Shown here: positions 16,049 to 47,188 of the stretch, piece by piece
Numbering within the stretch: position 1 is the first letter of the stretch
Layout of the letters: each line of letters begins with the position of its first letter
Assembly (NCBI GenBank): GCA_965603825.1
Contig: CBFDEM010000013.1
Span: forward strand, 372,001-436,000
Length of the DNA: 64,000 nt
Direction of reading: 5' to 3'
DNA from: Blepharisma stoltei ATCC 30299
Taxonomy: Eukaryota; Protista; Ciliophora
Program-made: the position numbers and the translations under genes
The notes under the pieces: generated by a model
Told to the model about the DNA's origin: nothing
Seen by the model: the letters and a program-made list of their open reading frames with translations, nothing else
The model's database searches: none

Positions 16049-18184
16049 TTATTTATCGTCTTCAATTAAAATGCCAGCTCCTGCAAACTTCGTAATAACC
16101 GTCCTCTTTATTCTCATCATTTCTCTAAAAGTGTCTTCATTGCCATGATACACTTCGAAATCATGCCAAACCTTCCAAAATTCCTCTTCTTCTGGCTTCC
16201 TTGGATCACAAAATTGCGAAATATAATTATAAATTGATCTTGCTCTGTCAATTTCTCCCAATTTTCTTTCAATATTTGCAAACTTCAGCCCAATTTCAAT
16301 TACTTGGGTAGGGATATTTAAAACTTCATAGACTTCTTCAAAGAGTTTCCTCATTTTGAAAATTCCGAAATAGTCACAAGTTTTCTGTAAATATACATAA
16401 AGCATTTCCACCTTTTCAGAATCCAGGACTTCTTTTATTGCTTTTGAGTAAATTTCGATTGAGTGGTTTAATAGCCCATACTCTTCTTCAAGCTTAGCAT
16501 ACAAGCAAAAAAATATTTTTTTCTTATCTTTTGGGCAGTTCGTCAAGACTTGCTCAAAGAGATCCCTTGCTCTTTCAAGCTTTTTTTCTCCATAGTGTTT
16601 TACAAATGAAGTGAGGTAGGAGATTCATATATCATATATAAATGGCCATGAAAAATTATTAATTCCTTGCTCGTATACACGAAACGATTCTTCCCAAAAT
16701 TCATTATTTTGTAAATAAGAACTGTAATTTAAGATTGCTTGAGGAGTCGCGATTTTTAAAGAAATCATCCTATCATAAACAGCTTTTACAGACTCTGTGG
16801 TTCCTAAGCTTTCTTCAAGGTCTACATATAGTCCTCATAGCTGCGTTCGCATTGATACTTCTTGCTGAAGACTTAGCTCTTTCGAGTATTTTTTGGCATG
16901 CCAGTTGCAAAAATGTTTGGCAAGTTTTAAGGCATCTCCATAGTGCCGATGTTCTAATTCCATTTCTATTCAAGCTTCACAGACTGCTTCGAGCTGTTTT
17001 GGATTTTTAAATTTCGATTTCGTTGCTTTGTCTAGTACAATTCTAGCACTCTTCATATCTCCATTTTTCTCATACAGCTTTGCAAACTCAATTCAAAGGT
17101 CCTGAGGTCGTCCAATAGCTTTCATAGGATCAAGAATAGTAACAGCCTCAGCATAAGTCCTCAGCATTTCTACAATGTCTCCTTCATGGAGCTTCACTCT
17201 TGATTTCCATTCATTCACATCATTTGGAGTTTCTTTTATTTTTACATCAGAAAGCAGAAATTCTCTGCTGTCAAGCAATTCTTCAAGTATTTTCATTTCG
17301 CTGTCAATTACATCTTGAGGATAACCTTCGCTTACATATAAATTTAGAAGTTCTTCTTCGAGCTGCGAATAGGCAGCAAACACAACTCCGAAGTCTCTCA
17401 CGCTTTTTACATCAGCCAAGGCCTTTTTATATACCCTCCTTGCTTCTTCAATTTCTCCTCTTCTGATGTAGAACTCGGCCAACATTTCTCAAGCTCTTCC
17501 TTGATCTTCCATTCTGCCCATGCATCTTTCTAAGATTTCTTTAGAGTTCTCAACAGCGTCAGGATTTTGCGAAACCAAGCGAGCAAGAGTGTTCCACAAA
17601 GTGCTGGCTTCATCATTTTCCACTACTTCTAATATAAGAGTGATGGCTTCTGATGAGTATTGATATTTTACCAAAAAATCGATGTATTCCTCAATGAAAA
17701 ATGGGTTGAATTGGAGATATCGGATATAAATCCTTCGCGTTGTTTCATGGATTGGGATAGTTTCTGCCCATTCTAAGTATTTGTCCCAAATCAAATCATG
17801 CTGGGTTAACGGAAGCTGCTGCAAGGAATAATCAAACATTCGCCTTGTTTTTGTGATATGATCTTGACTAATGAGAAAATCAAGATATATTAGCCATATT
17901 TTAGGCATGAGGTACATATATCTCAGAGCCCTTTCAAAGAGGAGGTTTGCAAGCTCATAATGCTCTTCTGAGGGACTTTCTGATACATATTGAGAAACTT
18001 CTGAAAGATAATTATATCACAGCTTATAGCTTCCGGGTATGTATGAGAGTGATCTTTCATATAGATTACATTTCTCCAGAAAAGTTGGAGCCACTTGTAT
18101 ACAATTTCACCAGGCTCGTTGGGAGTATGGATTGTGAATTAAGTCTTCTGTATTTAGGTCAGGTGGGAAAAACACATTCGCCAT
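16049..18184 (-). CDS. SYF1: Pre-mRNA splicing factor SYF1/XAB2 (HAT repeats)
   Basis: YERSLSYIPGSYKL-W(TGA)-YNYL, MPKIWLIYL, ERKLGEIDRARSIY, FEVYHGNEDTFREMMRIKRTV; single frame through several TGAs. Confidence 0.92.
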
Positions 18185-26383: not shown

Positions 26384-29300
26384 ATGGAAGAGCATCTTCT
26401 CCAAAATGAAGCTGACAGAAGAAGGTCTACATCTGTTGTAGCAACAGAAAGGACATTTCAAATTCCTCTTGTCGAACCTCCTATTATGTTTATCCCAAAT
26501 ACTATTAGCACAAGCAAATACAATTGTCTGACATTCCTCCCTAAAAATTTATATTATCAATTTCACAAATTAGCGAACGTTTATTTTTTGGTTATTGCAG
26601 TTTTACAAGTAATTCCTGCGATTTCTGTGTCAAGTGGTATTCCCACTATCTTATTACCTTTAATTTTTGTGATGACAGTAAGTGCAATAAAAGACTTCGT
26701 GGAAGACCGAAAGCGTAAAAAGTCAGATCAAGAAGAAAATTCAAGGAAGACCCAAATAAGGGCTGGTAAAAGCTGAAGAAAAGTCACCTGGCAAGAAGTC
26801 AGGGTTGGCGACATAATCCGCGTAAACAAAGATGAGTATTTTCCTGCGGATATCATCATATTAAATTCAAGTGATTCGAAAGGAATTTGCTATATAGAAA
26901 CCAAAAACTTAGATGGTGAAACAAATTTGAAGCACAAATCTGCAAATAAAGATACCCAAACTTATTTTAATAATGATTCAATGTTCGATGGAATTACAGC
27001 AACGATAAGATGTGAAGGACCAAATCCAATGATTTATCAATTTAATGGATTATTAACAATTCTTGACACAGTTTTAGTATTAGCTACCGAGCAGCTTTTG
27101 CTAAGAGGGAGTTCTTTGAAAAATACAGATTGAATTACTGGAATTGTTGTTTATACAGGCCATGAGTCAAAAATTATGCTTAATTCCCCACGAGCAAGGG
27201 CAAAAAATTCTAAGCTTGAAAATCAAATGAATAGGCAAATTATTTACATTTTCTTTTTGCAATTAGGCATATGTGTTTATGCAGCTGCATATTATGCAAT
27301 ATGGTTCAATTTGTCAAAAAGTGACACATATATGTACTTAGAGCTTGAAGAAACCTATAATAATGCTGGTATCCAGTTTATACTTCAATTTTTTACTTGA
27401 ATGCTTTTATTTACCAATTTTGTTCCTATTTCTTTATTAGTTACTCTCGAAATGGTCAAGTTCTGTCAAGCTATTTTTATATCATGAGACTTAAAACTAT
27501 ACTATGAACCCACAGATACCCCTGCAAAAGTTCAAAGTTCCAATCTTAATGAAGAGCTTGGGCAGATAAATTACGTTTTTTCTGATAAAACTGGAACCCT
27601 CACCTGTAATATTATGGAATTCAGAAAGTTCACTATTGGGGGAATTAGTTATGGAACAAATCAAAGGGTTCCTCAAAACATAAAAATCCCTCACGTAGAT
27701 TTTGTAGACGATCATTTCGATAAAACTTCGTCAGCTGCTTATGATTTTTTGATGCATTTAGCCTGCTGCCATACAATTATTACAGAAGAGAAAGATGGAG
27801 TAATTGAGTATAAAGCAAGTTCTCCAGACGAACTAGCTCTAGCAAATGCAGCTAAGTTTTTTGGGTATGAGTTTATGGGTAGGGACCAAGATTTGAATAT
27901 GAATCTAAAAGTTGGAGGAAAAGACGTAAAAATAAATGTGCTGAATGTTATTGAATTTAACAGTGACAGAAAAAGAATGTCAGTAGTAGTTAGGATGCCT
28001 GATAAACGTATCAAAGTGTTATGCAAAGGAGCAGACTCGATTTTATTGCCGAGAATCAGAAAAAGTGATACTATTGAGCCAACTTGGGCTCATTTAGAAG
28101 AATATGCAAACGAAGGGCTAAGAACATTAGTGCTGACTTCAAGGGACTTAACAGACTCTGAATACTTGGCGTGAAACGAAAAATACACTGAAGCTCTCAG
28201 AGATATTCATAATAGGGAAAAAAGGATTGCTGAAGTCAGTGAAGAAGTTGAAACAGAGCTGACTCTTCTAGGAGCAACTGCAATTGAAGATAAGCTTCAA
28301 GACCAAGTTCCTGAAACCATCCAATTCTTAAGAGATGCTGGAATCAATGTTTGGGTACTTACCGGCGATAAGGTTGAAACTGCTATAAATATTGGATTTT
28401 CGTGCAATTTAATTACATCTGAAATGATCAGAATTATTGTTCAGAGCGCAAAAACTCAAGAAGTCCAAGAAGAGCTGCAAAAAGGCATATTATCAACTAA
28501 GGCTGGATATGGAGCAAAGTTCGTGCTTGTGGTTACTGGAGACGCTCTGATTAAGGCTATGAGAAACGAAATAAAGCCTTTGCTAATGGAGATCACTGAT
28601 AGGTGCAATGTAGTCCTTGCGTGCAGAGTTAGTCCACAGCAAAAAGCTGATATTGTTAAGCTCATCAGAAATTCCAAGGTAAATATTCGCACTTTAGCGA
28701 TTGGCGATGGAGCAAATGATGTCAATATGATAACCGCAGCTCATGTAGGCATTGGAATATCAGGGCTAGAAGGTCAGCAAGCTGTTAGAGCTTCAGACTA
28801 TGCTGTTGCTCAGTTTTCTTATTTGAAGCGGCTCATGTTCGTGCATGGCAGAGAATGCTACAGAAGGAACGCTACTTTGATCTGCTACAACTTCTACAAA
28901 AACGTGTTACTTGCAATGCCTGTTTTCTTTTATGGAATGTTTTCAGTCTACTCTGGGCAGCTCCTTTACAACCAATGGACTTATCAGGTGTTTAATCTGC
29001 TCTTTGCATCACTCCCAATTGTAATTTACGCTGTCTTTGATAAAGAAACTGAATATGAGATTCTAGAAAATGACTCGAAGCATTACAAGCTTGGTCTAAG
29101 AGGAAGACTATTCACCACGTCAGCATTTTGGTTTTGGATTTTAGAGGCAGTTTTACAAGGTATGGTGATCTGCATGATTTCTCTTAATGCTATATGCACT
29201 GTTTCAGGAGAATGGGAAAGTGGTCGTATGGATTCAATGTATGTTTTTTCTGTTCTCGTCATGGGTCTTGTGATCATTGTTGTGAATGTAAAGATTGTCC

Positions 29301-29816
29301 TTTTCTCCTATATCCATTTTTGGTTTTCTTTGGCCATTGTTGCTATTAGCATTCTCCTCTACTTTTTTGTGTCAGCAATTATAACGGAGTGGCTTCCAAT
29401 GGCTTCATACCTTGATAACTATGACTCCAATAATAGCACTTCAAGGATGTTTAAGAACCCAAACTCTTATCTTTCATTAATTCTGGTTACTTATTTCTGC
29501 TTTTTCTTGACCCCTCTATTATATAAAAGCATTGAATTCGTAAATGTGCTCAGAGGAAAACTTGGAAAAGTTGCTGATGTCGAGCTGCCTGAAAATCTGA
29601 GTGAAATGGATATTGAAGAGGAAGAAGAAGAGACTAGAGATAAAGTCCTTAATGAATTACCAATTGAAGATAAGCTGAAAGCTCAAGAAACATTGAATTA
29701 CTTCAGAAGAAGCTGTAAGTTCTATTTTAGATACGGGCTTTGCGTTCAGTGGTGATGCTGGACATGTGCCTCAATTAACAGAGAATTTGATTCACAGAAC
29801 TTCAATAGGATGGTAG
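26384..29816 (+). CDS. P4-type ATPase (phospholipid flippase); 16-nt intron at 29715-29730
   Basis: ETKNLDGETNLK, FVPISL, DKTGTLT, SSPDELAL, FNSDRKRMS, TGDKVETA, IGDGANDV; spliced tail RRSYTGFAFSGDAG..-TAG. Confidence 0.95.
29715..29730 (+). other. 16-nt intron GTAAGTTCTATTTTAG
   Basis: Removal restores the conserved P4-ATPase C-terminal GFAFS motif. Confidence 0.88.
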
Positions 29817-29884
29817 AGCTCATTTATAATTTCCTATATTTTAATATGGATTTAGAAATATTGAAATTAATTTACAAATATGCA

Positions 29885-31081
29885 TTAATTTTCTTTGTTC
29901 TCTCTTCCTTTTATAGATTTAGGAGCATTATGCTCGCATTTATCCAAATCAATATGACTATTTGAACTCTGCAAAACTCCAGAGAATTTCATCCATGGGT
30001 CATCTCTTATTTGAGAGCACGTTGGCCTTTTATTTCAATCAGTCTGCAAAATTTTTCTTATCAGTGATTTTGCAAAAAATGAGATCCCAGTTGGCTCTTC
30101 AAAATTTCCAATCAATATATTTTTATATACTTCTTGGTCAGATTTGCCTCGGAATGGATAATTTCCACATAGAAGCACGTATAAAAGCACACCTAACGCT
30201 CATATATCTGCTGATCTTCCATAATACTCCCTCCTTGCCACAATTTCAGGTGCCATGTAGCTTGGAGTTCCACAAAAAACTGTGTTCTTTTTATCACTTG
30301 ACGTGTAGGTTGAAAATCCAAAGTCAATCAGCTTGACATTATTAGATTTATCAATCATGATATTTTCCAGCTTAATATCCCTGTGAGCAATAAATAATGC
30401 ATGGCAATAATCTATGGCTGATAATATTTGCCCAAAAATTCTCCTACCTTCACATTCATTGACTCGTCTATTGGGAAGCGCTTTGAGATATCTATGGAGG
30501 GACATCCCTCCAACATATTCCATAATTATATATATTTGGCTTTTTGTGTCTATAAATTCTTTCATTTTAATAATAAAAGGATGATTTAAAGTTTGCATAA
30601 TCATTATTTCTTTTTTGACGTTTCTTTTTTTATGAGGGTCTACCAGTTTGCTTTTTTCATAAATCTTGGCGGCATATCTGGCTTGTGATGGAATATGAAG
30701 TGCTTCTTTTACAACTGCATAAGATCCGATGCCAAGTACCTTCCCAAAATCATAAAAATCAATAGGGTCTTTAGCGTTTTCATCTTTATTTGCAGAGCCA
30801 TGATTTGCTACATGGCTAGTGGAAACAGGTGTTTTAGATCGCTTTTTTATTATCAAAGTTGGTTTGGAGTTTCTAGGAGATGAAAGTTTTAAAATGCGTT
30901 TTGTTTCAAAGATGTTTATGTTTTTAGCTCTCTTTTCATTATTGTTACTTGGAGTGCGCTCTGATGTTGTGTTTGTTGGGGTCAAATTGAATGTTATCAT
31001 TGTTTTACTGAAAATATTTCTTGAAATTGGTTTCAAATTGTTGACTCTATTCTTAGTTTCTAACGGACATTTTCCTTGCAT
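29885..31081 (-). CDS. CAMK-group (SNF1/MARK-like) Ser/Thr kinase
   Basis: LGIGSYAVVK, HRDIKLEN, DFGFS, CGTPSYMAPE, SADI-W(TGA 30200)-ALGVLLY; TAA 29885. Confidence 0.92.
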
Positions 31082-31239
31082 TTTTAATTTTAAGTTATTA
31101 TGAATTTGGCACAAAATATGAATTCTGATCTAATCATTCGTGCTCAATGCTTAGTAAACTGCCAAATTAAAATATTTATAGATCAATATTCAGTTACATA
31201 AAATTCAAAGAAATAAAATAATTTGATTTTTAAGGCTCC

Positions 31240-32424
31240 TTAGTTTGACATTATCACGTTATCGAGCAGGAGACAGAAAAGCGCTGCTGTTACTATACCC
31301 AAGTTGTTGAAGCACAAACTGACATTAAAAGTTGCTTCCTTTAGCTCTTTCGGGAGCTTCTTGGTATTCAAAATCAAATAAGCCACATTCACGTAGCTCA
31401 TTCCTCCCATGCATCCGACCCAAATTGACAAAATAAATTCTCCCCACATCGTTAAAAACAAAAACTCAGCCTCGAACCACCACAAACAAAAATTAAAGGC
31501 TTGCAAAGCTGTAACAATTCACACTTGTGGCACTTTAAAGCACTTCAAAGACGACCTTGAGAACAGCACTCCAATTTGATAGCAAAACTGTATTATAATA
31601 AACGCATTTTCTTTAAAAAAGCTTCCATTATCCGAATATTTTAATGTTGCTCTGTCCGCGAACCCAGTAATCACACAATATTCTAAAAAATATACACTCC
31701 CTAAATTAACTGCCCAAAATCCGGCTTCAGCCCAAATAATTGGGATTTGACTTCGAGAAAATAAGGCATTTCCTGTTTCTGCTGAGATTTTCCCTATTTT
31801 TTCAACACTATTATTTTCCGGATTTTGTTCAACAAGTGGGATGCTTTTTATTGAGTTTTGTTTCTTGCTCTTCTTATAAACCCAGAGAAATCCTAGCCAG
31901 TAAGGGATTAATAAAGGAGTGACTATTAAAAAAACTTGATAGTTTTCCAAACTTACTGCTCGGAAAATTAGCCATGCTCCAGAGCCAGCAACCCCAGCAA
32001 AGCCTGTGCCTGATGAAAATCCAACAATATACTCACTTGGAAACGACTTTTGGAAGGCAAGATTAATGCATTCTCCCCAGGACTGAGACATCCCCATCAA
32101 AAGTGTTGCCAATAAAGCTATTGGAAATCCCCAGCTTCCATTTGCGGCAGAACATATAGCCATCACTCCGAAAGATAAAACCATCGAGCATGCAATAATA
32201 GTAACTCTGAGCATGGTGTTCATCCCCACGAGGTATCGGAAATTCACAGCAAGCACTAATAAATTGCAGCAAACCAGCATAAATTGGAACAAAGGCATTA
32301 AATTTTGTTCTCCAAAATGTGTAGCGATATCTTGCGCACCGACTCCTATCATAACATATCCTAGGTTGTTTACCAGTCCAATTACAAACAAAATTGAGAA
32401 GTGCTGCCAAAAATCTATATTCAT
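31240..32424 (-). CDS. CLN3: Battenin/CLN3-family membrane protein
   Basis: GLVNNLGYVMI..AQDI, FSSGTGFAGVAG, VYFLEY, YQIGVLFSRSS, GCMGGMSYVN; joined via TGA 31519. Confidence 0.9.
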
Positions 32425-32474
32425 TTTATTTATAGGTGATCCTGTGAAATTTCATAATTATTTCTTAAGCTAAT

Positions 32475-33506
32475 ATGGCTTCAGTCAATAAGAGCATGTC
32501 TGCGCTTGCCACTTTGGTTTTCAGAATGCAAAATGACCCTCTAGGGCCTAAAATGATCAAGACTCTCGAGCCAATTTTTATTAAGCACAGAAGGAAAATG
32601 TCTCATATTGATCTTAGCTATATTGTAAAGCCTTATGCAAATAATCCTTGAGTTTCAGATGAAATGAAGCAAGCAATAATCCAAAGTACTATAGAATTAA
32701 AAGAAAAACTTGAGCCTTTTAATATCATCAATATTTTCCCATGGGTGTCAAAATTTGAAAATACACAGAATTTATTTGTTGTTTTTCAGGAAAAAATGCT
32801 TTCGATTGATTGAACTCCAAAAGAAATTGCTATTCTGCTAAGTGCTTATTCTAAAGTTAATGGAAGCACATTTCTGTGAAAAAATATGGAAAGAAATATT
32901 CTAAGCTTAAAGAATCAATTAACCTCATATGAAATAAGTGATTTCCTCTTTAGCTATACTAAGAAAAAAATAAAAACTCGGCTATTTGATGAATTAAGAG
33001 ATATTGTGATGAAAATCCCATTTAAATCTAATGATGCAGTCTACACAATGCACTCATATATAAAAAACGAACACTATGATGTTTTAATAATTGATAAACT
33101 ATCAAGAGAAATTAATCTCAACGAAATTTCTCTCAAAGAAGTATGCATACTTTATGCTTCTGTTCTGAACTGCCTAAGATATTTTAATGAATTGCCAAAA
33201 GCTGCCAAAAACACAAATATAGAGGAGTTCACCAAAAATATCAGTAATTTTACAGTCGAAATTGAGACATTGATTCGTAAAAATTTGAAGATCTTTCATA
33301 TAATTGATCTATTATCAATCCTTGAAGTGGTCGACAAATATAGCAGGCCAATTTCAATTAAATCTATAGCACAATCAATCTCATCAGCAGATCAGCTAAA
33401 AGGGGATCTTTCAATTAAAGGATTTGAAACTGTAGCCAATATCCTTGCCAAAAACAATCTCCCTATCCCAACACCATTAATAGACATAATTTTTACTTTA
33501 ATTTAG
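32475..33506 (+). CDS. Helical-repeat protein (HPR/OPR/FASTK-like), possibly organellar RNA-binding
   Basis: Frame open from ATG 32475 through three TGAs. Units of about 35 aa: MSHIDLSYIVKPYA, LEPFNIINIFPWVSK, WTPKEIAILLSAYSK, LTSYEISDFLFSYTK. Confidence 0.6.
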
Positions 33507-33552
33507 TAAAATTTCGTGTTTAATTAAATTTACAAATACCAAATTTAGGGTC

Positions 33553-34899
33553 TTATATATTGTAAAAATCCTCGTAGCAGAAAGTAGGCTTTTCAAAAAT
33601 CTTTCCTTTTGCTGGTTCTTGATTTAATATTAATGATTCTGTTGGTTGTTGATTCATTATTGGTGACTGAACTAGCTCTTGATCAATTAATGGTAACTGT
33701 GTTGAAGGAGAAAGTATGGAACCAGCACTTCTTGCTCTATTTTCAGGACGAAGTCTAATGAGTCCGTCAACGACTTCAATGTTGGCATTGTTAAACTTGA
33801 TTTCATTAATAAACCGCCTTTCTTCCTCCAAATAGTCTAGTTGATCACTTCCTCGTTTATATTTTTCATTGAATTCATTAACTATCTTTACATGCTTCAT
33901 CAAAGAGTCTCTAACTTCCTTAAACTTTTCGTTAATTTCTTCAAGCTGTGAGGAATCTCTTTTTCTATTTATTGGTGCTAACTTATTTTTTAAAGTTTTC
34001 ATGATGCTCTGCCAATTTTCTTTTGCTTCAGTCTTTTTCATTTGCAGTAAATATTTTTCGATTGTATTGATTATTGAGCTTATTTTCAGCCCACTGATGT
34101 TTTCAATGATTTTATAAATACACTCGGAATTGATGTCTTCATCTTGCTGGATCATGGCACCAATTTTACCAATTTGATTATAAGCTCCTCGAGGATATGC
34201 AGTGGCAATTCCACCTTGACTTTTAACATCATAAATATCATCAAGTTCTTCAAGTAAGTGCTTCATTTTGTCTGGGACATTTTCTAAATCAAGGCTCCTT
34301 TTTCTTTTTAATTCTATATTTTGAGACTTGGAGGCTGGAGCATTATTGATTAAATTATGGAATTCTTCAGCGCTGATGACGTAGTAACCTTCTTTTTCGG
34401 CATTTCAAAATTCCCGCTCTCCATCAATTGAAATATGGCCTTCATGTTCATCATCAATGAAGTCGTCATCTAAATCATACAAGTTTTCGTTTACTCCATA
34501 AGAACCGCTACTATAGCTTTCTTCACTTCCTTCTAAGTTTCCTTGACTGTTTTTATTTTCATTGCTTTCTCCATGCTCTTCCATCGGTGTGTTCAGTTCA
34601 AAGTTCTCATCAATTTTCTCAATTTTGCTTCTGTGCTGTCCAATTTTTTTAGAAAGTGCTAAATACCCATATTTTTCTAGCCTTTCAATCAGCCCTTGCA
34701 TAAAAACAGGATAAGAGTGAGATTCTTCTGATTCATCTGAAGAAGAATCAGAAATATCATGCTCTTTATTATATTCTTCGACTAAAGATGCATAAGAAAC
34801 GACTTTATTTTTCGAGAGATCAATTTTGAAAGAATAAGAAAAGGAGTTTTGTGTGCTTGCTTCACTGCCTTCATTAGTTTCTTTCTTTTCAGAGTCCAT
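33553..34899 (-). CDS. Ubinuclein/Hpc2-like (HUN domain) histone chaperone subunit
   Basis: LIERLEKY..NLYDLDDDFIDDE..EGYYVISA spans TGA 34405 and matches the HUN pattern YDxxDxFIDD..GF/YY. Confidence 0.68.
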
Positions 34900-35116
34900 A
34901 GTTTAAGCCAGAATTTTAAATTTACCATTTTAGTTTAGCGCTAAAATGCTTAATCCTTAAAGAATTTATAAATAAATTGTTTAAAAGTATTTCGTATTTT
35001 AATCTGATATGATGAAATCGCTAATTTGATTAAGAAAATTATTAATAATATTAAAAGACACTGATTATTAATAGTATCATCAATTTTAATTTTTTAAATT
35101 AATAATAAAGCATTAT

Positions 35117-36190
35117 ATGCCTATAATTATAAGCATGGAATATCTAATTGATTTAAATAGAGGATCTCTAAGAACAATTTTTCAGATCCACAGTAGCGAG
35201 AAGCAAACTATTTCTTATAATGAATTTATCAAGTTCTGTACTATAGTGAGGATCTATCCAGATATGCTTTCTTCATTCGAACTAAAAAGACTCGTAATGA
35301 AAACTGCTAATTCCCACACTTACATTGACAGAAAAGTAGAGCTCGGTTACCTTCAATTTGAAAAGTTATTAGTTCTGATAGCTGAGCATTGCTTTGATGG
35401 GATCCAAACAAATGAAAAACTAGGTCTTATGTTCATGCATATAAAGAACCCATGTAAGCAAAACTATCAAGTTGAAATTTTTACAAGCCCTGATAACTAT
35501 TACCCAAAAGAAGACTTCTCTCCAATCACAATTCAAGCTCTTAGTCACTCAATTGAAAGGCCAGGGATCAAAACTACATCCTTTATTAAATCTAATGGCC
35601 ATCTTGGTGAATCAACCCATGAGCATATCAATGAATCTTCAATAAAACGAGTCATTAACAAATCAGCATCACTAAAAATTCCATTTAGCAGCATGGGTGC
35701 TTTTAAAAATCAAAGCATTTTGAGTCCAAAATTCATTCAACCGACGCCAAAAAATATAAATAAGAAAGTCAAACAACTTTATGCGTTAATTTCTCCACGG
35801 AACAGTTCATCAAGAAACATTTCATCTATTTCTCCTAAAAACAAGAATGAGAGCAGCATTTCCATTGACCACTCAGTCATGTCAAATAAATCAAAATCTA
35901 TAGTAGATTTATCGAAACTTCCAAGTAATCTGCACATCAGCCCAGAAGCAAATTCCATACAAAAATCGAATGACAAAGATAAATTGGATCAGTTAAAGAG
36001 CGTCTTTTTAAACTTTAAGTCGAATTTCGAAGAGAAAAAAGCGATAAAAAGACCCTGCATAGGAGCTCAAATGCAAACTTTCATAAAAAATATCCACAAA
36101 AGGAGGTATGAGTCTGTAAGATTTATATAGAAAATTGTTTTGAAATTTGCTTTTGAAAACTGGAAACTGAAAGCAATGCTAAAAGGTTAA
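35117..36190 (+). CDS. Hypothetical protein with N-terminal EF-hand/p25-alpha-like domain and Ser-rich tail; 15-nt intron at 36116-36130
   Basis: ISYNEFIKFC..IYPD..LGYLQFEKLLVLIA; spliced end KIVLKFAFENWKLKAMLKG-TAA. Alternative ATG at 35135. Confidence 0.7.
36116..36130 (+). other. 15-nt intron GTAAGATTTATATAG
   Basis: Consensus match with A at position 10; removes an in-frame TAG and adds 19 codons. Confidence 0.8.
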
Positions 36191-36219
36191 TTATATATTT
36201 TAAGAATAATTTTATCAAA

Positions 36220-36663
36220 ATGGAAGAAATGAGCAAAAATCTTTCAAGCTTATCAGAAGCTCTTGATGACATAACAAACCAAATTCAGCCACTTTTTGAG
36301 CATGAGTCCCTTTCCCAACTGAATCTCCAACTCACTCCTGAAGATTCTCTCAAAATGAACACAGCAATTGCATATACTTTGCATTCTCTATACTATATCC
36401 TTCTAAAAACTCAAGGAAATGATCTCAGCGATCACCCACTAAAAAAAGAAATTGATAGAGTCAAAGAATATGTTTCAAAGGTTCAAAAATTTTTGTCTTC
36501 ACCCACTCCTCCACCAACGAGGATTGACAAGCAAGAAGCTGCAAGATTAATCACAGCTAACATAGAGGGAAAAGGAAGAGTATTCAAAGGAAGCACTCCT
36601 TTACCCCAAGCAGGCCATTTGAAGTGGAAAGAAGATGTTGATAGAATTCTCGGAAAGAAATAA
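36220..36663 (+). CDS. C1D: C1D/Rrp47 (Sas10/Utp3/C1D family) exosome cofactor
   Basis: AYTLHSLYYILLKTQG..HPLKKEIDRVKEYVSKV..RIDKQEAARLI. Confidence 0.82.
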   Translation: MEEMSKNLSSLSEALDDITNQIQPLFEHESLSQLNLQLTPEDSLKMNTAIAYTLHSLYYILLKTQGNDLSDHPLKKEIDRVKEYVSKVQKFLSSPTPPPTRIDKQEAARLITANIEGKGRVFKGSTPLPQAGHLKWKEDVDRILGKK

Positions 36664-36707
36664 TAAACACAGTTTTCTTATATGATTTATTTTCAACTAT
36701 TTTCTAA

Positions 36708-39396
36708 TTATTGGAATGTTGTAGGTCTTCTATCCATCGTTTCTTCTTTATTTAGGCTATCAATCAGCTCGGTATCTTCTATTGCATTTATTATATTGGC
36801 TTCTTTATGCTCTTTAATTTCTCTCAGTTTTTCTAAGTTTGTATTAGCATCGACCAAGTGGGGTTGAGTTTTCAATCTTGCTAATGGATTTTCTGCAGGA
36901 GTTGGAACAGTCACTGGGGACAGATTCCAAATCAGCTCAGAATAGTCTTCAATGCTTCTATCGCTTGAAAATTTTGCTGCATGCAGCGCTCCAGAAATGG
37001 ACATTTTGTTCCATCTGATTTTATCTTTATAGGCAGCATCAGATCTTTCATGAGCTTCGACATATGAGCTAAAATCATGGCATAACAAATAAGTCTCGTT
37101 TTTTTCTAAGTCCTCCAATAAAGATGCCATTTCTTTTGCGTTGCCAAATCGGTCCTCTCTGATAAGAGTGAATATATTCCTTAGTCTTGGATCTATTGGG
37201 TGATCCCCTTTTGCTAAACTTTCTCTGATTGATTGAACTTGATCTATTCTGGCTCCAAAAATAAACATATTATCTTCGCCTATTTCTTCTGCAATTTCTA
37301 CATTTGCGCCGTCCATAGTTCCGATAATAACTCCACCATTCATAACGAACTTCATATTACTTGTTCCAGATGCTTCTGTTCCGGCTGTTGAGATTTGTTC
37401 GCTTAAATCAGTTGCTGGGATAATTAATTCTGCAATAGAAACTGAATAATTTGGAATGAAAATCACTTTCATCAAATTTCCGATTTCTGGATCATTGTTT
37501 ATTACTTCAGCAACACAGTTAATCAGTTTGATGATTTTTTTAGCTGCAATATAGGTCGGCATTGCTTTGCCTGCAAAAATACTCATGAAATCTCTTAATG
37601 ATGACGTCAAACATAGAGTATGGAGACACTTCAATTTCTGTCTCTTTTAAGATGAATTTAGTTAACCTTACTTTGTTCTGGAACTTTATATCTGACCATT
37701 CTTCTTGAAATTTTGAATCGGTGATCTTTGGGTCTAAATTCCTCAATAATGACAAATCAGCTAATCAATCACTTCCATCTAAGTATTTATTATAAATATC
37801 TGCTAAGCCGTTATTTGCACAATGAATTCACCTTCTTGGGGAAACTCCATTTGTAATGTTGATAATCTTATGCGGAAAATACTCATTAAAATCTTTAAAA
37901 ACTAGATTCTTTAAAAGATTTGTGTGAATTTGTGAAACTCCATTGATTTTATGGCAAGTTAAGTTGCAAAGATTAGCCATTCTTATTTTTTTATGTTCAC
38001 CTTCTTTAATAAGTGACAAAGCTTACAGTAAATGGTTTTTTCTATCTTCACTTTCATTTTCATATCTCTTTTGGATTTCTTGCATGAATTGAAAGTTAAT
38101 GCTATAAATAATTTCTAAATGTCTTGGAAAAAGCTTTTGAAATAATTCTATTGGCCACTTCTCCATTGCCTCAGGAAAAATGGTATGGTTAGTATATGCG
38201 AAAACTTTCTGAACCAATTTTCAGCTGTATATTGGATCTAAGTCATAGAGGTCAATCAGAATTCTCAGCATTTCTGGTATCGCTAAAGTTGGGTGTGTGT
38301 CGTTAAGCTGAATGGCAACTTTACTAGGTAACTCATCCCACTTGTGACCTTTCTTCAAAAATCTTCTTATAACATCTTGTATAGTTGCAGAGCAGAAGAA
38401 ATACTGCTGCCTCAGTCTCAGCTCTTTTCCTGAATATGTTAAATCATTTGGATATAGCACAGAAGTAATTAGCTCCGCTTCTTGCCTAGACTTAACGGCT
38501 TCAAAATAGTCCCCTGTATTAAAAGAAGAAAAATCAAATTCATTTGCAGGCCTAGATCTCCATAGCCTTAGATTGATAGTGTTAAACGTTCTATAACCAG
38601 AAATTGGTGTATCATAGGCCATTGCGATGATATTTTCAGCTGGGATTCAGTTTCTTTTTTCCCTTCCTCCTTCATAGACAGACTCGACATGGCCTCCGAA
38701 ATAAATATCGTATGCTACATCAGATCTTTCAATTTCCCAAGGATTTTGCTGAATAAGCCAATAGTCTGGAAGCTCAACTTGGTAGCCTTTGATGATTTTT
38801 TGCCTGAACATTCCATAATCATAACGAATTCCATATCCTCAGCCAGGATATTCAAGAGTGGCCAGCGAGTCTAAATAGCAAGCTGCAAGCCTTCCAAGGC
38901 CTCCATTTCCTAAGGCAGGGTTGATTTCTTCTTCATAGAGGTCTTCTAGCTTAAATCCAAGATCTGATAAAGCTTCCTTATAGTCTTTTTCCAAATCAAT
39001 ATTGTACAAATTATTTTTGAGAAGGCGGCCTAAAAGATACTCGAGAGATATATAATAAACTCTTTTATTGTCAGAAGCTGTGAAGATCTGTTGAGAGTCA
39101 TTTCAACTCTCAATAAGCCGATCTCTTACAGAAAATGCTGTGGCTCGATAGCATGATAAATTATCAAAGTTAAACCTTGTTCTAGCAAGAGTATACTCAA
39201 CATGGGAAACAATGGACTTTTGAATTGTTATTAAATCTGAGTCTAAGTATTCAGCCATGAGTTTTCATAACTTGTCTGTTCTTTCTTCGCCTTTTAGCTG
39301 GCCATGGAATTCCGGGCGAAATTGCTTTTCCTTTAAAAAGACTCTTGAGCTTTTTCTATGAATGGATCTTCTTGGAGATTTCTGTTCTTCTTCCAT
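36708..39396 (-). pseudogene. Glycogen phosphorylase, disrupted as assembled (in-frame TAA at 38023-38025; frameshifting deletion at about 37580)
   Basis: [60 protein letters not shown]. The frame changes between KRFHEY and IFAGKA and the intervening conserved segment is missing. Family identity is secure; pseudogene status less so. Confidence 0.8.
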
Positions 39397-40046
39397 TTAA
39401 TGGCTATTAATTTTTATCATATTAATATCCATTAATTGTCAAATCAATAGTAATTGAAGGCTATTTTAATAGTTTTATCTTTTCCCATGATTGCGAAAAC
39501 AATTTAACGATTTAATCCTTAAGCTGCTAATATTTCTTTTATTGGATGGAACCTAAGACTCTCATTTCAAGATGAAAAAGTTGGATATGCTTTTTTAGAG
39601 TTCCCAATTTATGCTCGAGGATTATTTTGCTATAATGATAAGCAATAAAAGAAAATTTATTGCTCTTTTAGCGTAAAAATTTTTAAACAACTCGATTTGA
39701 AAAATATAAAATCTGAAGAGTCCCATAAATAAAATGTTAAAAAATAATCATATATTTAAACAGCAATATGAATGCTCTGAATTATTTTTGATTTGAAAGG
39801 ATCAGAATCTATTCAAAAACACCACAGCGTCGCAAAATCTGCAGACTCTTCAATGCTGCCGCTCCAAGCTGAAATCAGCTACTTGTAGCTTACAGCAATT
39901 GATTGAAATTATTGTACTAATAATACAGCGCAGAGCAGGCACTATCGCCTCTAAGCTTTTGATTTTAAAGATTCTTCGTCTATAGAATATGCAGCAATCG
40001 ATGCTTCTCTTGAGATCTATAATTAGATGTTATTTAATAAAATAAA

Positions 40047-40439
40047 TTAAACAAGATTGAGATTATATTTAGACTGCATTTGAACATAAAAATCTTTTAG
40101 TTGGGAGCCATCAGGAAGCTGTGAAAATTGTGATAAAATTCTTCCAGAATGCAGCCTTAGATTTACGTCGGCTCCGAAAAAATAAAGATCTCTCCAAGTG
40201 AAAAGAAGCCCAAAAAGCATAGGATATCGAATAAGTCGTCTTGGAAATTTAAAAAGCAGTGGCCCTACAAATGATAAAAAGATATAGGAAAATACAGCTC
40301 CTCTTCCACCCATATATACCAAATAGCCCATATGGTCTATGATTTCTTCCTTCATTTCTTTATCTCTATTTGCTACCCTAGCTTTATTTAACTCTTCACT
40401 TATATCTTCAATAAGCATCTTTTTCTGCTTCCAGTTCAT
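40047..40439 (-). CDS. Small hypothetical membrane protein (1-2 TM)
   Basis: 130-codon ORF from ATG 40439 to TAA, with two hydrophobic stretches. Confidence 0.65.
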   Translation of the reverse strand: MNWKQKKMLIEDISEELNKARVANRDKEMKEEIIDHMGYLVYMGGRGAVFSYIFLSFVGPLLFKFPRRLIRYPMLFGLLFTWRDLYFFGADVNLRLHSGRILSQFSQLPDGSQLKDFYVQMQSKYNLNLV

Positions 40440-40563
40440 GATATTATAATGAATATAAATAAGCAAATGATAAAATTTTCATATTTATTTCTCACAGATA
40501 GCTAAATTTTTAATTTTACTTTTATTTAAAAACTAAATACATAGATATTATATCTAATCTCAG

Positions 40564-41469
40564 CTATGCTTCTGTTTTGGCTCTATAAGGGGAGCTATTT
40601 CTACTACCACTACTCACTGAACTATCAGAAACCTTTGCGGATTGTATTATTTGCATAGATGACACCTCATTTTCATTTGGAGCATTATTGCCTTCTTGAA
40701 CCTCTATTTCATCATCTTCTTTTTCAACCAGCCCTTTTGCTTCTCTCCTTTTTAATATCAAATCATAAGTTGTAATTCCATGGCGGATGAGATATACATG
40801 AAATCCTATCAAATATGCATTTGAAATAAAAATCAAGAAACTTAAAATCATCATTGACCAAACAATTACCAAGATGACAACATGAGCGTTTTTTCCATAA
40901 ACGTCTTCGCATTTATCCCGAAAATCACTAGAATCATCAATTCCTAAATGAATTTCATAAGCACAGCAAATAATAAAACACGCTTGGGTGATCTCTACAA
41001 TCCAAATTAAAAGAAAAAATATTGAATAATTCTTGCGGCCCACACAGTTATTTACTCATTTGCAATGGTGGTCAAATTTGTCTGTGCATCTATTGCATCT
41101 CATACAATGCTTACTATCAGCACTTACTGGGGAGCTGCAGAGTGAGCAATAGTTTGTATATGATTTCCTAAATTCTTCTCTAAGTTAGAATTACTTTGCT
41201 TTTTGGGCTTCTAAGTACTCTAAGACCATTGGATCAGTTGGATCAGAGACTGTTAATATGAATCCTAAAATTATTGTAAAAATTTGCAAAATTCCATATA
41301 TGATTGACATGGGAATTTGCGCATTCATTTCTTGGACTGGAATTATCAAGGCAAAGAAAACGAAAATCGTAGTTAACGTAATAATCCAACTTGTAAGCTG
41401 ATATGGGTGATATGGGAGCTGAAGACCAGTGCTTTTCACTTTACGCTCTGACTGCTCTTTATCTTTCAT
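40564..41469 (-). CDS. DHHC palmitoyltransferase (ZDHHC1/11-like); 15-nt intron at 41180-41194
   Basis: [40 protein letters not shown](TGA)[10 protein letters not shown], GITTYD. Confidence 0.94.
41180..41194 (-). other. 15-nt intron GTAATTCTAACTTAG
   Basis: Removes an in-frame TAA between the TM segments and the DHHC domain. Confidence 0.92.
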
Positions 41470-41757
41470 TTTTGATAATTTTTTTCCTAAGACTCGTGAT
41501 GATGAGATTAAATAATGAAATGATGCTGTGTGAAATAAGTTTTCTCAGAGAAGTTTGAGGCATAAACAGAAGTATAATTAATTTAGTATTGGGGTTACCA
41601 GTTAATTTTTATGAAATATCCAGTAAAGCTACAATGAATCTAGCTGCCAAATCCATGAAGCTATAGTAATCATTTTCTAACAAAGTAATAAATTTTAAGT
41701 TAAGTGAATATGAAAAATTTATAGATAAATGACAATATTGAGAGATTAGTGAATTAT

Positions 41758-42768
41758 TTAGAAGGTAATTCCATTCATATCATAAATCACAGCCATAATA
41801 GAACTTTGCTCATAATGATCTATGATAAGAATATTCCCTACTTGATAATGCTCATGCTTCAAGCTTTTCCAAAACTCTGGTAAGAAAGGATTCCCTAAGT
41901 CGGCCAGCTGAATCAGAGTATGTGGCTTCAAGAATTTGATAGAATCCAAAATTGTTTGAGCATTAGGTGTTAAAGTCCAAGAAACTTTGAAAATTTGATT
42001 AGGCCAAGTGCTGCTCATATACTGTTGCACAGTATCTTTATTGAATTTAATCATCTTCCTAATAATTGGAGAATTAGCATATGTATTATAAATTGTGTCT
42101 CCAGGCCATATAGGAGCTGAATCCTCCTCTGACATAGTGACAATAACTGTTTTCCCACTTTCTATCATATCATTTATCGTGAAATTGAAACTTAAATTTA
42201 CAGGATAAATAAATTCCCCAAAATATTCAATAATCATGGCTCTGAGATCCCTAATATTTTGATGAGAAGGAAATCCGCTGAAGTGAGAAACTTCAAGGAC
42301 CAATATTTCATTTTTATATTCTTCCATGAATTTAGAAATATTTCCAAAAAGTTCAGTTATTGGAGAACCACAGAGGTAATGAAAAGTGACCCATTGATTT
42401 GTTGTATTGTCCCATCCTGAACGAATATCAAGATATCTTATTCCTCCCAAAAGCTGCTGGTAGAGATTTTGATCTTGGGCTAGTGCAAAATTTCTTGTTA
42501 CCCATGTTTCATTTTTACCTATTTTTTGGCCAACTGCAGCAGCTTCATTTGGCCAGTCTGAGCCTGCGTCTGGCATCCAAACATCTCCCAGCCAATAAGC
42601 GCCACTATCATGAGTTCCTGGAAGCGTGATCTCTTTAAGTGTTTTTTGGCCTATAAATTCAAGAGAGTCACTCATTCACGAGGCTGGATTAATTCGCCCT
42701 GCTGGAACTTTGGATAAAACATATGAAATCGCAGTTAAAGCAAATATAATTAAGACCTGAAAGTTCAT
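41758..42768 (-). CDS. PI-PLC X-domain protein (PLCXD-like) with signal peptide
   Basis: MNFQVLIIFALTAISYVLS leader; PAS-W(TGA)-MS, LPGTHDSGAY, QLLGGIRYLDIR. Confidence 0.88.
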
Positions 42769-42966
42769 ATATGAAACCACTATTATTATCAGAATTATTT
42801 CCCTTCATAATTAGATTGCAATTTTGATATTTTAATTTAAATGGAAAATATAAGAGCAATAATTTATTTCACACTCTAAATTAGGCATCGGCTTGGAGAA
42901 TTATTGTAGATTTGAAACATTAGAACAAGCAATGTAATTTTTTGGAAAAATTTTTGATAAACAAAA

Positions 42967-45288
42967 ATGTATTTTGAGGCACAACAGACAAATGATGAAA
43001 GGGAATTAAAAGATACCGAGGAAAAAGATGCAAAAGATCTGTTGACCATGAATAAAAGTACTACTCATCAAATATTTAAAAGCCAAGAAATAAGAACATC
43101 AACCAAAGTTATTACAAAATCTTGATCAAAATCGAGCGGAGAAAAATCTGAAATATCAGACTATAGAAACAGTAATTATATAATTAATAGAAGATCAAGA
43201 CAAGGGATTATGGAGGCGAATAAAATTATTAAGAATGAAGCTGAAATACAAACCGATGAAAGATATTTGAAGGTATTGAAGGGAATACATTGCTTTTTTT
43301 ACATAATAGAATTTAAAATGAAAGAGAGTTTAAAAGAGTGCTTTCTTAGTATGTGCAAGACTAATAGTATGAATCAAATATATCATGCTTTGCTTTTAAT
43401 TGCAGTTAAGCTTAAATTACTTCTAAATAGAAGTTTTATGGGATGGAAAATGCAATGAATTGCTGAGAAAACTAGAAATCTACAGAAATCAACACTCTCA
43501 TTAGAAAATTTGAATATAAACCAAATTTGCATCAATAAGTTATTTCTAGAAAAAAGTGAGAATGAGACTCAAACTAGCACATCCTTTATCAATATAATCA
43601 AATGATTAAATGCAATGGTGCATATACTGGAATTTAATAAAAAAATAAGCTTGATTGTAGGATTTTCAAAAATTTCCCAATTCAACTTGAAATCTTTAAA
43701 ATTAAGGGCTATAAGGATAATAGTTCGTTTCCCAATGCACGCATTAAAGCAGGCATTTTGCAATTGATCATTATTTAGCATTAGAGGAAGTGAAAAAGAA
43801 AGAAAAATATCAAATCTCCAAATAGAATCTTTGTCTGAGCTAACAAATAATTTTTATAGAGCAGCAGAGATTGAAAGAGAAGATATTGAAATACAGACAG
43901 ATATGAACTATTTTGACTCTATACGTTCAATTCAGTGCTTATTTTGTATTTTTGATTACAAGAGAAAATTAATCTTAAAAGATAGCTTTTGCTCTATTGA
44001 AAATGCTAGTGACTTTTCTTCCTTCAGAAAATCTTTAAGAAGGTTGAATAGTAAATTAAAAACGGTTCTATCTCATGCATTCTTGAAATGGAAAGTAAAA
44101 TGTGATTGCAAATTCTATGTAAACATGAAAATTGATATTCTCAATAGAGAGCAAGTTGAAAGAGAATTGATATGTAAAGGATTTCTCATATTATTTAAAT
44201 TTGAGTACAAATACAAAATTTTTGCATTTTCTACGATTCGAAGGGGATGCTTGATAAAAAAGCACGATTCTGAAGTTGAGTGTGTATCAAACCAGTTTAA
44301 ATTACATAAAGTTGACTCTGCAGCTAGCCAAATATATCGGCTAATGAAAAAGATTAGTTACATAAATACTCAAACCTGTTTTAGAATATGAAAGGACTGT
44401 ATATCTGCACTAAAAATTCTATCATTAGATTTAGAACTTTCTTGTGAGAGAGCCAAAAAAGCATGCTTATTTTTTCTTTATATCCAAAGTAAATTGAAAA
44501 AGCAATATATGTGAAAATATTTTTATAAACTCAAACTCAACGCTATAAAATTTTCCCAACAAGTCTGTCTAAACAAACTTGTTGAGAAAGAAAAATTAAT
44601 TTCAGCTACAAAAATTGCAAAGTTGCTATATTTGCTTCATTTTAAAAGTAATCAAAAAATATTCTATAATTTGAAAATCTTTAATTTACAAAAAGCATAT
44701 TGAATAGCTAAAAGAAAATCAAAGGCAAAATTTTTATTTTCTCTTTGCAAGCAAAAATGGCTTATAAAGATGCAGGCTTCACTTTTATTATGAAAAATAA
44801 ATTGAAAAACTCATCAATTATATTCAATTCGTGATTTATTAAATGATATTAAATCAAAAAAGATTGAACTGAACCAATCAATTACAAATGAAAGAAAGGA
44901 GCTCGATGAACTAGACAAGAAAATTATATTTCAGCAAGAAATTATCAAAGGCCTCTTAAATGAGCGCGATGAAGTGGATCAGTTTAGTGAAAGCAGTCAG
45001 TCTCAAGACACAACTCGTTGCAATGACAGTTCAGCTTTTACTCCTGTGAAATCTTCATGTTCCTATAATAATCTTACTTCTCCCTCAATAACTCCTATCC
45101 CTAAATCCATTTCTCGATCACCATTGATCTCCGATTTTTCTCTTAAAACACAAACACATACAGATAAATCTCCCGCTAAAAAGGCTCTTCACATACAGTA
45201 CAAATCAACTAATAATTCCTATGGGTTACTTATGGCTCTAGTTGTTTTTATTCCCATCATAATTTGCATTTTTATGTTATTATCTTAA
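42967..45288 (+). CDS. Hypothetical 773-aa repeat protein with (I/T)QT motifs, FxxW (Sfi1-like) motifs and a C-terminal TM anchor
   Basis: Single frame with about nine TGAs and no TAA/TAG, joining track ORFs 43210, 43831 and 44974. Confidence 0.75.
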
Positions 45289-45310
45289 CTAGAATATAAA
45301 TTTGTTAATA

Positions 45311-47188
45311 TTAGGCTTTCTTTCTCCACAATAATCCTTCTAATCTTGCGCAAGGCATTTCAACAAATAAGAAGAGGAATAATGCAAATGCCCATGATGC
45401 AGCAGCTAGAAAGATAAAATCTTTGAAACAATATATTCCGCTTAGGATTGCAGAGCCTTCTGAGTTACCATAAAAGGCTGTGAGCAAGCCAATGTGCCCT
45501 AGAAATACTGCGAAGCTGAGTTTTCCTAAGGGTTCCCAGAAGCTAAGTGATAATATCTTTGCAACGAATCTGAGCCTTCCAAAAAGAAGAGGCAATAAAA
45601 TCATAGCCAACCCAATAGTATATCCTAGTCTGCATGAGCCTTGAAATACAGCATTTTCTCCATCAGTTCAAATATAGCTGTTTGTTATGTCATTATATAC
45701 TTGCTTTTGAATCAAAATAAAGAATAAAACTGTGATCCATCCCATTAAAAAGCTAATGATTGCGCCGAACTTTGTATCTCTGATAATTTTGATGATACCA
45801 TTGCAAAAAGGATCCGGATAAGTGTCTTCTTCTTTAGTCACATAATTTTTGTAATATCTTAAATATATAAACCCAATCCATACTCCTAAAAAGTAAGGTA
45901 AAAATCGTATGTATGGCTTGGTGTAGTACCAGTAAAACCAGAGGTCAACATTCATTTTGGGGTCTGCAACATTCACATAGAAGTGATTTTCTGCAGCTAG
46001 AGAAATTCCAATTGCTAGTCCAGCTATAACCAGAAGGAGATTAATTACCCATGCTAGCCATTTTGCAGCATTGTAATATAATATAATAAGCAGTTGACCA
46101 AGCCAGAAAAATTGCATGTCATTAGCTAAGTACCATCCAACTCCAAAGCATCCATTGCCTTTGCCATTTGGAATAAAGTTATTTAAAAAAAGAAAATTTG
46201 TTCACCAATATGAGTCGCATTGGTTGTTAAGTCTTGCTGTAGTAGACCATAATGGGCCATTTCCTAATGATATAATCACGAAATTGTAAAAAATCATTAA
46301 GAATCCATAAAGAGGAATTATTCTTAAATACCGATGGATATTTAAATATTTCCATCCGCCAACGCCCAAATGTCCTCTTTTAGCTTCTAAAGTCTTTAAT
46401 ATTAAATATCCTGTAAGAAGTCCTCCAATAAAGAAAAAGGAATCAACTGAATAGTAGCCTCCATACATTATTGCCACCCAGAGCTGAGACGCAATATCTG
46501 GAGACTCCATCAGATTTGTAATCACTTTAAAGTGGTAAAAAGTAAAAGCATGCCCAACGATAACCCAATTGATCATAAAAAATCTTAAAGAATCCAGTAT
46601 AGATAAGTTATCACCCTTTTTTAAAACTCTTTGTTTTACCAAGCGTGCATAATTTGAAGATAAAGAGCAACAATTGAGTATTACGTTATATGTCGATTGT
46701 CTTTCATTTTTATCACTTAACTTGTCATTAGAACTTTTAGATAGATAGCTTGCAGCAATACAAAATCCTACCCATGCTATAAGAAAAGTAAGAGTTAACC
46801 AACCAGCTATGCTAAGAGGATTATCAAATCCAGACTGCACAGAGAGCTCAAAATCACTATTTTCAGGGTTATAATTCAATAATGAGAATACCGCTTGCTC
46901 AGTTTGGCTTTGTGAGCATTCTTGAGGGACACATAGCCCCATGTATATTCTTCCTTGTGTTTGATGACGTAATAGAAAATAATTATTGTTTTGCCTAAGA
47001 CAACTTCTATAGTGGCCTAAATCATTCAATCCTTTCCCGTTAAATAAAAACATTTCAACACTGTGAGGATAGTTATTCTTATTAAAAAGAGTAAGCATTG
47101 TCTGGTTAAATCTCTCTTCAATTGCTTCCATGCATTTTTGATTTGCCAAGCTGACTATTATTCATGCAAGCAAAAGAGCACCTTTCAT
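45311..47188 (-). CDS. NRF-6/O-acyltransferase-like (Acyltransferase-3) membrane protein
   Basis: NDLGHYRSC..GLCVPQECS (NRF domain), LDSLRFFMINWVIVGH, SVDSFFFIGG, HRYLRIIP, WYLANDMQFF, YTKPYIR, FVEMP. Confidence 0.9.

Follow-up and report, generated by a model that had tools for sequence, protein, structure and literature searches.

The DNA analyzed here, which we call the window, is a stretch of 64,000 nucleotides that corresponds to positions 372001–436000 of contig 13 in the somatic (MAC) assembly of Blepharisma stoltei ATCC 30299. This assembly (41.46 Mb in 64 contigs) is a consensus obtained by merging Flye assemblies of two independent HiFi libraries (70x and 76x), and the genome to which the window belongs is 66% A+T. 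UGA encodes tryptophan in B. stoltei, and its introns are 15–16 nt long (PMC9942806). Our analysis of the minus strand between positions 39396 and 36708 shows a glycogen/starch phosphorylase gene, the fourth and a divergent paralogue in this genome, that is broken in the somatic assembly; it was delimited by matches to PF00343, by translation with UGA as Trp and by alignment to an orthologue and to the other paralogues. The PF00343 (GT35) profile matches the gene in two parts, profile positions 1–461 (607 bits) and 459–713 (302 bits). The frame that runs downward from position 39396 encodes a phosphorylase as far as the codons AAG AGA TTT CAT GAG TAT (KRFHEY), whose final TAT occupies positions 37581–37579, and then in the somatic form enters a frameshifted tail (37540–37578, minus strand; FCRQSNADLYCS) that ends at a stop codon at 37540–37542. 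The C-terminal part of the enzyme (36708–37578, minus strand) is out of frame with the N-terminal part. It begins at the same junction with (AGT) ATT TTT GCA GGC AAA GCA, which reads (S)IFAGKA, carries the PLP-lysine motif EASGTSNMK and is open to a stop at 36708; the open reading frame list, Pfam and PDB matches (E value 3e-68) all identify it. Thus KRFHEY runs into IFAGKA in another frame, as the earlier note on this DNA had reported from the sequence alone, and the pentanucleotide AGTAT that it placed at the junction is present there (37583–37579).

The family motifs (the PLP-lysine EASGTxNMK, TNHT and one further 11-residue motif) are all present in the translation and alignment, with the PLP-lysine motif in the out-of-frame part of the somatic form. 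A continuous open frame across KRxHEY-KRQ is absent from the somatic DNA, in which KRFHEY is followed by the frameshift. In the three full-length paralogues encoded in the same genome (L001–L003), HEY is separated from GGKA by about 33 residues (KRQ...RVF), and in the solved phosphorylases and the syntenic orthologue described below a stretch of about 33 residues (KRQ...) likewise separates HEY from (I/G)GKA. Because the paralogues, the orthologue and the solved phosphorylases all keep these residues, a piece of 3n+2 nucleotides is missing from the somatic gene. The public annotation of the locus contains three gene models of 457, 146 and 254 amino acids; these three fragments are one pseudogene, and the gene is by descent a member of the GT35 family that is a pseudogene in the soma.

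Two simpler accounts of the junction were tried and rejected. A tiny intron there finds no GT...AG of suitable length and, in an organism with introns of 15–16 nt, could not supply about 33 residues. The second account arises from a stretch just upstream of the junction (37620–37646, minus strand), where the IFAGKA frame reads KRQKLKCLH and so mimics the KRQ-L-x-x-L-H expected after HEY; owing to this mimic the second Pfam match starts there, at profile position 459. A collapsed tandem duplication of 68 nt would place this KRQ after HEY, and was rejected since the true KRQ... lies in the 101-nt germline insert described next; for the same reason we take the upstream KRQ to be fortuitous, the out-of-frame reading of purine-rich DNA.

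The germline-scaffold reference was the published "MAC+IES" assembly of B. stoltei ATCC 30299 (GCA_914767885.1). To make it, BleTIES was used to reconstruct IESs from the PacBio CLR reads of a sample enriched in micronuclei (Seah et al., 10.1101/2022.05.02.489906; PMC9942856), and these were inserted computationally into the MAC assembly, the bases outside the inserts being copied from MAC. The two DNA forms were compared assembly against assembly, by an exact walk of the window along GCA_914767885.1. A 21-kb locus of that assembly (L008, which includes L006) matches positions 45864–28599 of the window without a single mismatch once 14 inserts are taken into account, and the C-terminal phosphorylase fragment is also encoded on its contig CAJZBQ010000013.1. 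In the walks of both L006 and L008 an insert of 101 nt (L006:3794–3894) lies at 37578/37579, precisely at the phosphorylase junction, and the somatic form retains a single TAT, which contains TA (37579–37581, minus strand), where these 101 bp are lost. The insert has a length of 3n+2 and is open in the frame of the gene, such that the germline form reads KRFHEY, then KRQ...PKVY, then IFAGKA; when it is added, the Pfam match becomes one ungapped stretch (profile 399–647). Alignment of query residues 1–231 with residues 514–743 of a rabbit muscle phosphorylase chain puts the start of the insert at about Lys574 and its end at about residue 606 in rabbit numbering, a placement taken from the alignment offset and not from a printed alignment.

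The insert shares 18 of 33 amino acids and 62 of 99 nucleotides with the syntenic orthologue. A search of the somatic genome with the insert found no other match, so it is not mis-mapped sequence from a paralogue; judged by its sequence, it is orthologous coding DNA and not a transposon relic. The earlier note had predicted that the lost piece would be about 90–110 nt long, with a length of 2 mod 3, and that it would encode KRQ... and include the residue equivalent to rabbit Lys574. The insert agrees with each of these predictions, and its length corresponds to the roughly 33 residues found at this place in the heterotrich orthologue. The same note had suggested that a germline copy would carry a TA-bounded 3n+2 insert encoding KRQ..., and the MAC+IES assembly does carry one. 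Its picture of the ends requires some correction: the insert is bounded by TA, as proposed, with a direct repeat that consists of TAT and not of AGTAT, and the second AGTAT copy that it postulated is absent. Nor is the Ser of SIFAGKA an original residue, since the germline form reads ...VY/IFAGKA and the Ser is a by-product of the junction.

The ends of the insert resemble those of IESs. The terminal direct repeat is TAT, of which one copy is left in the MAC, and just inside the TAs lies a 5-bp inverted repeat (TA-TAAAC...GTTTA-TA) such that both ends read TATAAAC. Among the 1,979 pairs of TAs in the window that are 99–103 bp apart only two (about 0.1%) have an inverted repeat of at least 5 bp. 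Both ends also fit the weak consensus of the periodic IESs, TAT-rr (5'-TAT rrn tttt; Seah et al., PMC9942856). The lengths of the periodic IESs peak about 10 bp apart, at 65, 72, 82, 92, 101 and 110 bp (Seah et al., PMC9942856), and 101 bp is the centre of the published 99–103 bp size class of 688 IESs (Table S1 of Seah et al., PMC9942856); the length match is weak on its own, as roughly half of the lengths between 64 and 112 fall in one of the peak ranges. Twenty TA pairs with periodic spacings and inverted repeats of at least 5 bp stay in the somatic sequence of the window (at 18151, 19160 and 18 further sites), so IES-like ends alone do not suffice for excision. These 20 retained pairs are candidate sites of cryptic excision.

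Two other inserts lie in the same gene, and these are ordinary IESs whose removal restores the reading frame; the exact walk places the junction of a 394-bp IES with the terminal direct repeat GATTT at 37754–37758 and that of a 213-bp IES with the repeat TTA at 37107–37109 (both on the minus strand). Alignments were made with a joined coding model from which these two IESs had been subtracted, and searches used the unspliced sequence. Among the 14 IESs of this 17-kb stretch, the 101-bp insert is the sole short periodic one; it alone is open in the frame of its host gene, and it alone, on removal, breaks an open reading frame instead of restoring it.

The direct repeats of these 14 IESs (window positions 28599–45864) are more varied than the published "mostly TA-bound" summary: seven of them have terminal direct repeats without TA, and four have long repeats of 9–13 nt (TTGCTGTTT, ATCCAACTTTTT, AAAAGGAGAGAA and TAAATTCTTTAAG). 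The last of these repeats, 13 nt long, flanks a germline-only insert of 457 bp at window position 34955 (L008:12731–13187), which is 50% G+C and starts with TTAG repeats, a composition unusual for an IES.

The phosphorylase gene contains a second lesion. At codon 458 (38023–38025, minus strand), 148 codons upstream of the junction, an in-frame TAA replaces the Ser codon TCT of the orthologue; the flanking alignment is colinear and ungapped (NHLL*ALSL against DHLLSVLSL), and the first public gene model ends at this TAA. An intron over the TAA was considered and rejected, since the candidate GT...AG spans are 14, 17, 23 and 26 nt long, none of which is 3n, and the orthologue aligns here residue for residue. 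The earlier note had proposed that genome editing inactivates the gene. Excision does break its frame; the TAA inactivates it as well, and editing is thus not the sole cause. Because the MAC+IES assembly repeats the MAC sequence outside its inserts, it gives no independent germline reading of the TAA, and either of the two lesions may have arisen first. Beside the TAA, at window positions 38026–38060, the gene has two more codons (...ENESED...) than the orthologue and all of the paralogues, an in-frame insertion in a variable loop.

The gene is otherwise well kept, with a pN of 0.17 against a pS of 0.81 that is saturated and from which no dN/dS ratio can be derived. Relative-rate tests against three outgroups were not significant (73 versus 57, 70 versus 58 and 65 versus 51 unique changes). 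As the rest of the gene is so well preserved, we conclude that it died recently and is now a pseudogene in the soma.

The syntenic orthologue is found in a related heterotrich (L007:3225–6005, on a Logan contig of run SRR24908292), where a Sas10/Utp3 gene adjoins it. Its identity with the B. stoltei gene is about 72% at the DNA level and 73% at the protein level; it too reads UGA as Trp, and it forms an uninterrupted frame of 927 codons that includes the segment missing from the B. stoltei soma. In a search of a collection of 5.8 billion proteins the nearest relative was only 67–71% identical. The B. stoltei paralogue and this orthologue form a clade separate from the other three paralogues, with (I/F)AGKAMP(T/S)Y in place of GGKAAPGY and a short N-terminus, which may reflect an old functional divergence of the enzyme.

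These relatives also give the ancestral state of the two ends of the insert. The left end (GAG TAT AAA C) also occurs in paralogue L002 and in the orthologue. For the right end, B. stoltei has GTT TAT ATT, against GTG TTT ATC in the orthologue and GT(C/T) TT(T/C) ATG in the paralogues; that is, the orthologue and all three paralogues have a Phe codon (TTT/TTC) at the position of the B. stoltei TAT, and the GTG to GTT change also distinguishes B. stoltei from the orthologue. From this comparison it appears that the TA at which the right end would be cut is ancestral, and that a B. stoltei-specific change of TTT to TAT (Phe to Tyr) probably gave it the T that follows TA and completed the inverted repeat.

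We think it probable that the 101-bp piece is ancestral coding DNA that is now removed by IES-type excision from a redundant, and now dead, phosphorylase paralogue. The insert shares with the short periodic IESs of B. stoltei its absence from the MAC reference, its presence at the same site in the MAC+IES assembly, a TA-containing repeat, a length at the 101-bp peak and TAT-rr ends, here with an inverted repeat, as well as its non-repetitive and intragenic nature (Seah et al., PMC9942856). By this account the DNA would be cut during macronuclear development at two TAs 101 bp apart, as in the removal of short periodic IESs and presumably by the domesticated PiggyBac excisase, leaving one TA(T); the 3n+2 loss shifts the frame, and translation would end 12 codons past HEY. 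Of the two ends, the left is ancestral and the right would have been made to match it by the TTT to TAT change, so the IES would have been born from coding DNA and not from a transposon. Since codon 458 is an in-frame TAA and the three other paralogues are intact, there would be no selection against the excision. Against this account, the 3-nt microhomology at the junction also fits a spontaneous deletion, and the 20 retained TA pairs indicate that ends of this kind are not enough to bring about removal.

A possible, clearly less likely, variant is that excision is incomplete: the 101 bp would be a "cryptic IES" of high frequency, lost from most MAC copies and kept by a sizeable minority of them, and the reads that carry the insert would come from MAC DNA. 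The IES filters applied by BleTIES (at least 10 supporting reads, a length of at least 50 bp and a retention of at least 0.075; Seah et al., PMC9942856) ask only for that low retention, in a MIC-enriched library that was still rich in MAC DNA (Seah et al., PMC9942856), and 10,048 low-frequency cryptic excisions of MAC-destined DNA have been reported for this strain (Seah et al., PMC9942856). The coding frame of the insert is still perfectly open, in keeping with this variant. On the other hand, cryptic IESs, as published, are deletions seen only rarely against a reference that has the sequence; at this locus the reference, built from two HiFi libraries, is itself the deleted form, and the TAA at codon 458 means that copies retaining the insert would give no full enzyme either.

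It is quite unlikely that the two forms differ by an ordinary germline deletion, made by slippage or by microhomology-mediated joining at TAT and heterozygous or polymorphic, with one form in the MAC assembly and the other called an "IES". BleTIES cannot separate an indel allele from an IES, a pseudogene tolerates deletions and the junction does have its 3 nt of microhomology, but ATCC 30299 is virtually homozygous, with just 1,277 heterozygous SNPs and a heterozygosity of 3e-5 (PMC9942806), and the TA ends, the 5-bp inverted repeat and the length at the centre of a peak would all have to be coincidental. Although only assemblies were compared, an artefact by which the MAC assembly wrongly lost the 101 bp or the MAC+IES assembly wrongly gained them is very improbable, given that what the insert encodes in frame is precisely the orthologous segment of the phosphorylase, so that it is no spurious consensus, that it has no second match in the somatic genome, that the somatic form comes from merged assemblies of independent libraries, and that the published annotation, made on the somatic form, splits the gene at the junction.

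IES-type excision of coding DNA at this locus may be compared with several known systems. An ordinary B. stoltei IES interrupts a gene, which regains its frame once the IES is gone; the phosphorylase piece, in contrast, is the gene's own conserved coding sequence, is not derived from a transposon, and breaks the frame when it is removed. Like the cryptic IESs described in Blepharisma and in Paramecium (Catania et al. 2013), it appears to be MAC-destined DNA with chance IES-like ends that is cut between TAs; unlike them, it has its excised form in the somatic assembly and its retained form in a minority of copies or in the germline, while a cryptic IES is by definition part of the somatic assembly and lacking in just a few reads. 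According to Catania et al. (2013, PMC3698930), a sequence whose excision is rare in one species may be faithfully removed in a different one. A further parallel is offered by the Paramecium mating-type genes, where excision removes either the mtA promoter or a part of the coding sequence of mtB (Singh et al. 2014, described in Sawka-Gądek et al., PMC7900874). As in the phosphorylase gene, a coding segment of mtB that lies between two TAs with IES-like ends is lost from the MAC and the gene is inactivated, for example by a 168-bp deletion in P. biaurelia mtB (PMC7900874). The mtB excision, however, is an alternative and maternally inherited switch with a phenotype, whereas the phosphorylase locus is known here from the assemblies of one strain and has a second lesion.

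The locus is a well-resolved new example of a known phenomenon, the excision of coding or MAC-destined DNA, and its insert already figures among the publicly listed IESs; the two published accounts of the B. stoltei genome and its IESs considered here make no mention of IESs that carry host coding sequence. We consider it unlikely that the 101-bp piece is one of a class of Blepharisma "coding IESs" that are removed from part of the MAC copies, or in some clones, and give heritable dosage or on/off control of ordinary genes. If such control were real it would extend to a heterotrich, and to a metabolic gene, the kind of control known for the mating-type genes of Paramecium, and the point mutation that created the switch would still be visible.

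IESs are generally regarded as decayed transposon insertions. The 101-bp IES clearly consists of ancestral coding sequence of the gene itself, for which the orthologue and three paralogues supply the ancestral state, and a single Phe to Tyr codon change seems to have completed an IES-like end at a permitted spacing. The locus would also be a natural substrate on which to study what the Blepharisma excisase needs in cis (the TA, a T as third base, a short inverted repeat and the helical phase), and it carries a warning for annotation, in that some of the gene pieces that are "missing" from the Blepharisma MAC reference are in the IES track. If our reading is correct, it is a concrete and datable case, within a ciliate lineage that is among the earliest to branch, of an IES born from DNA destined for the soma.
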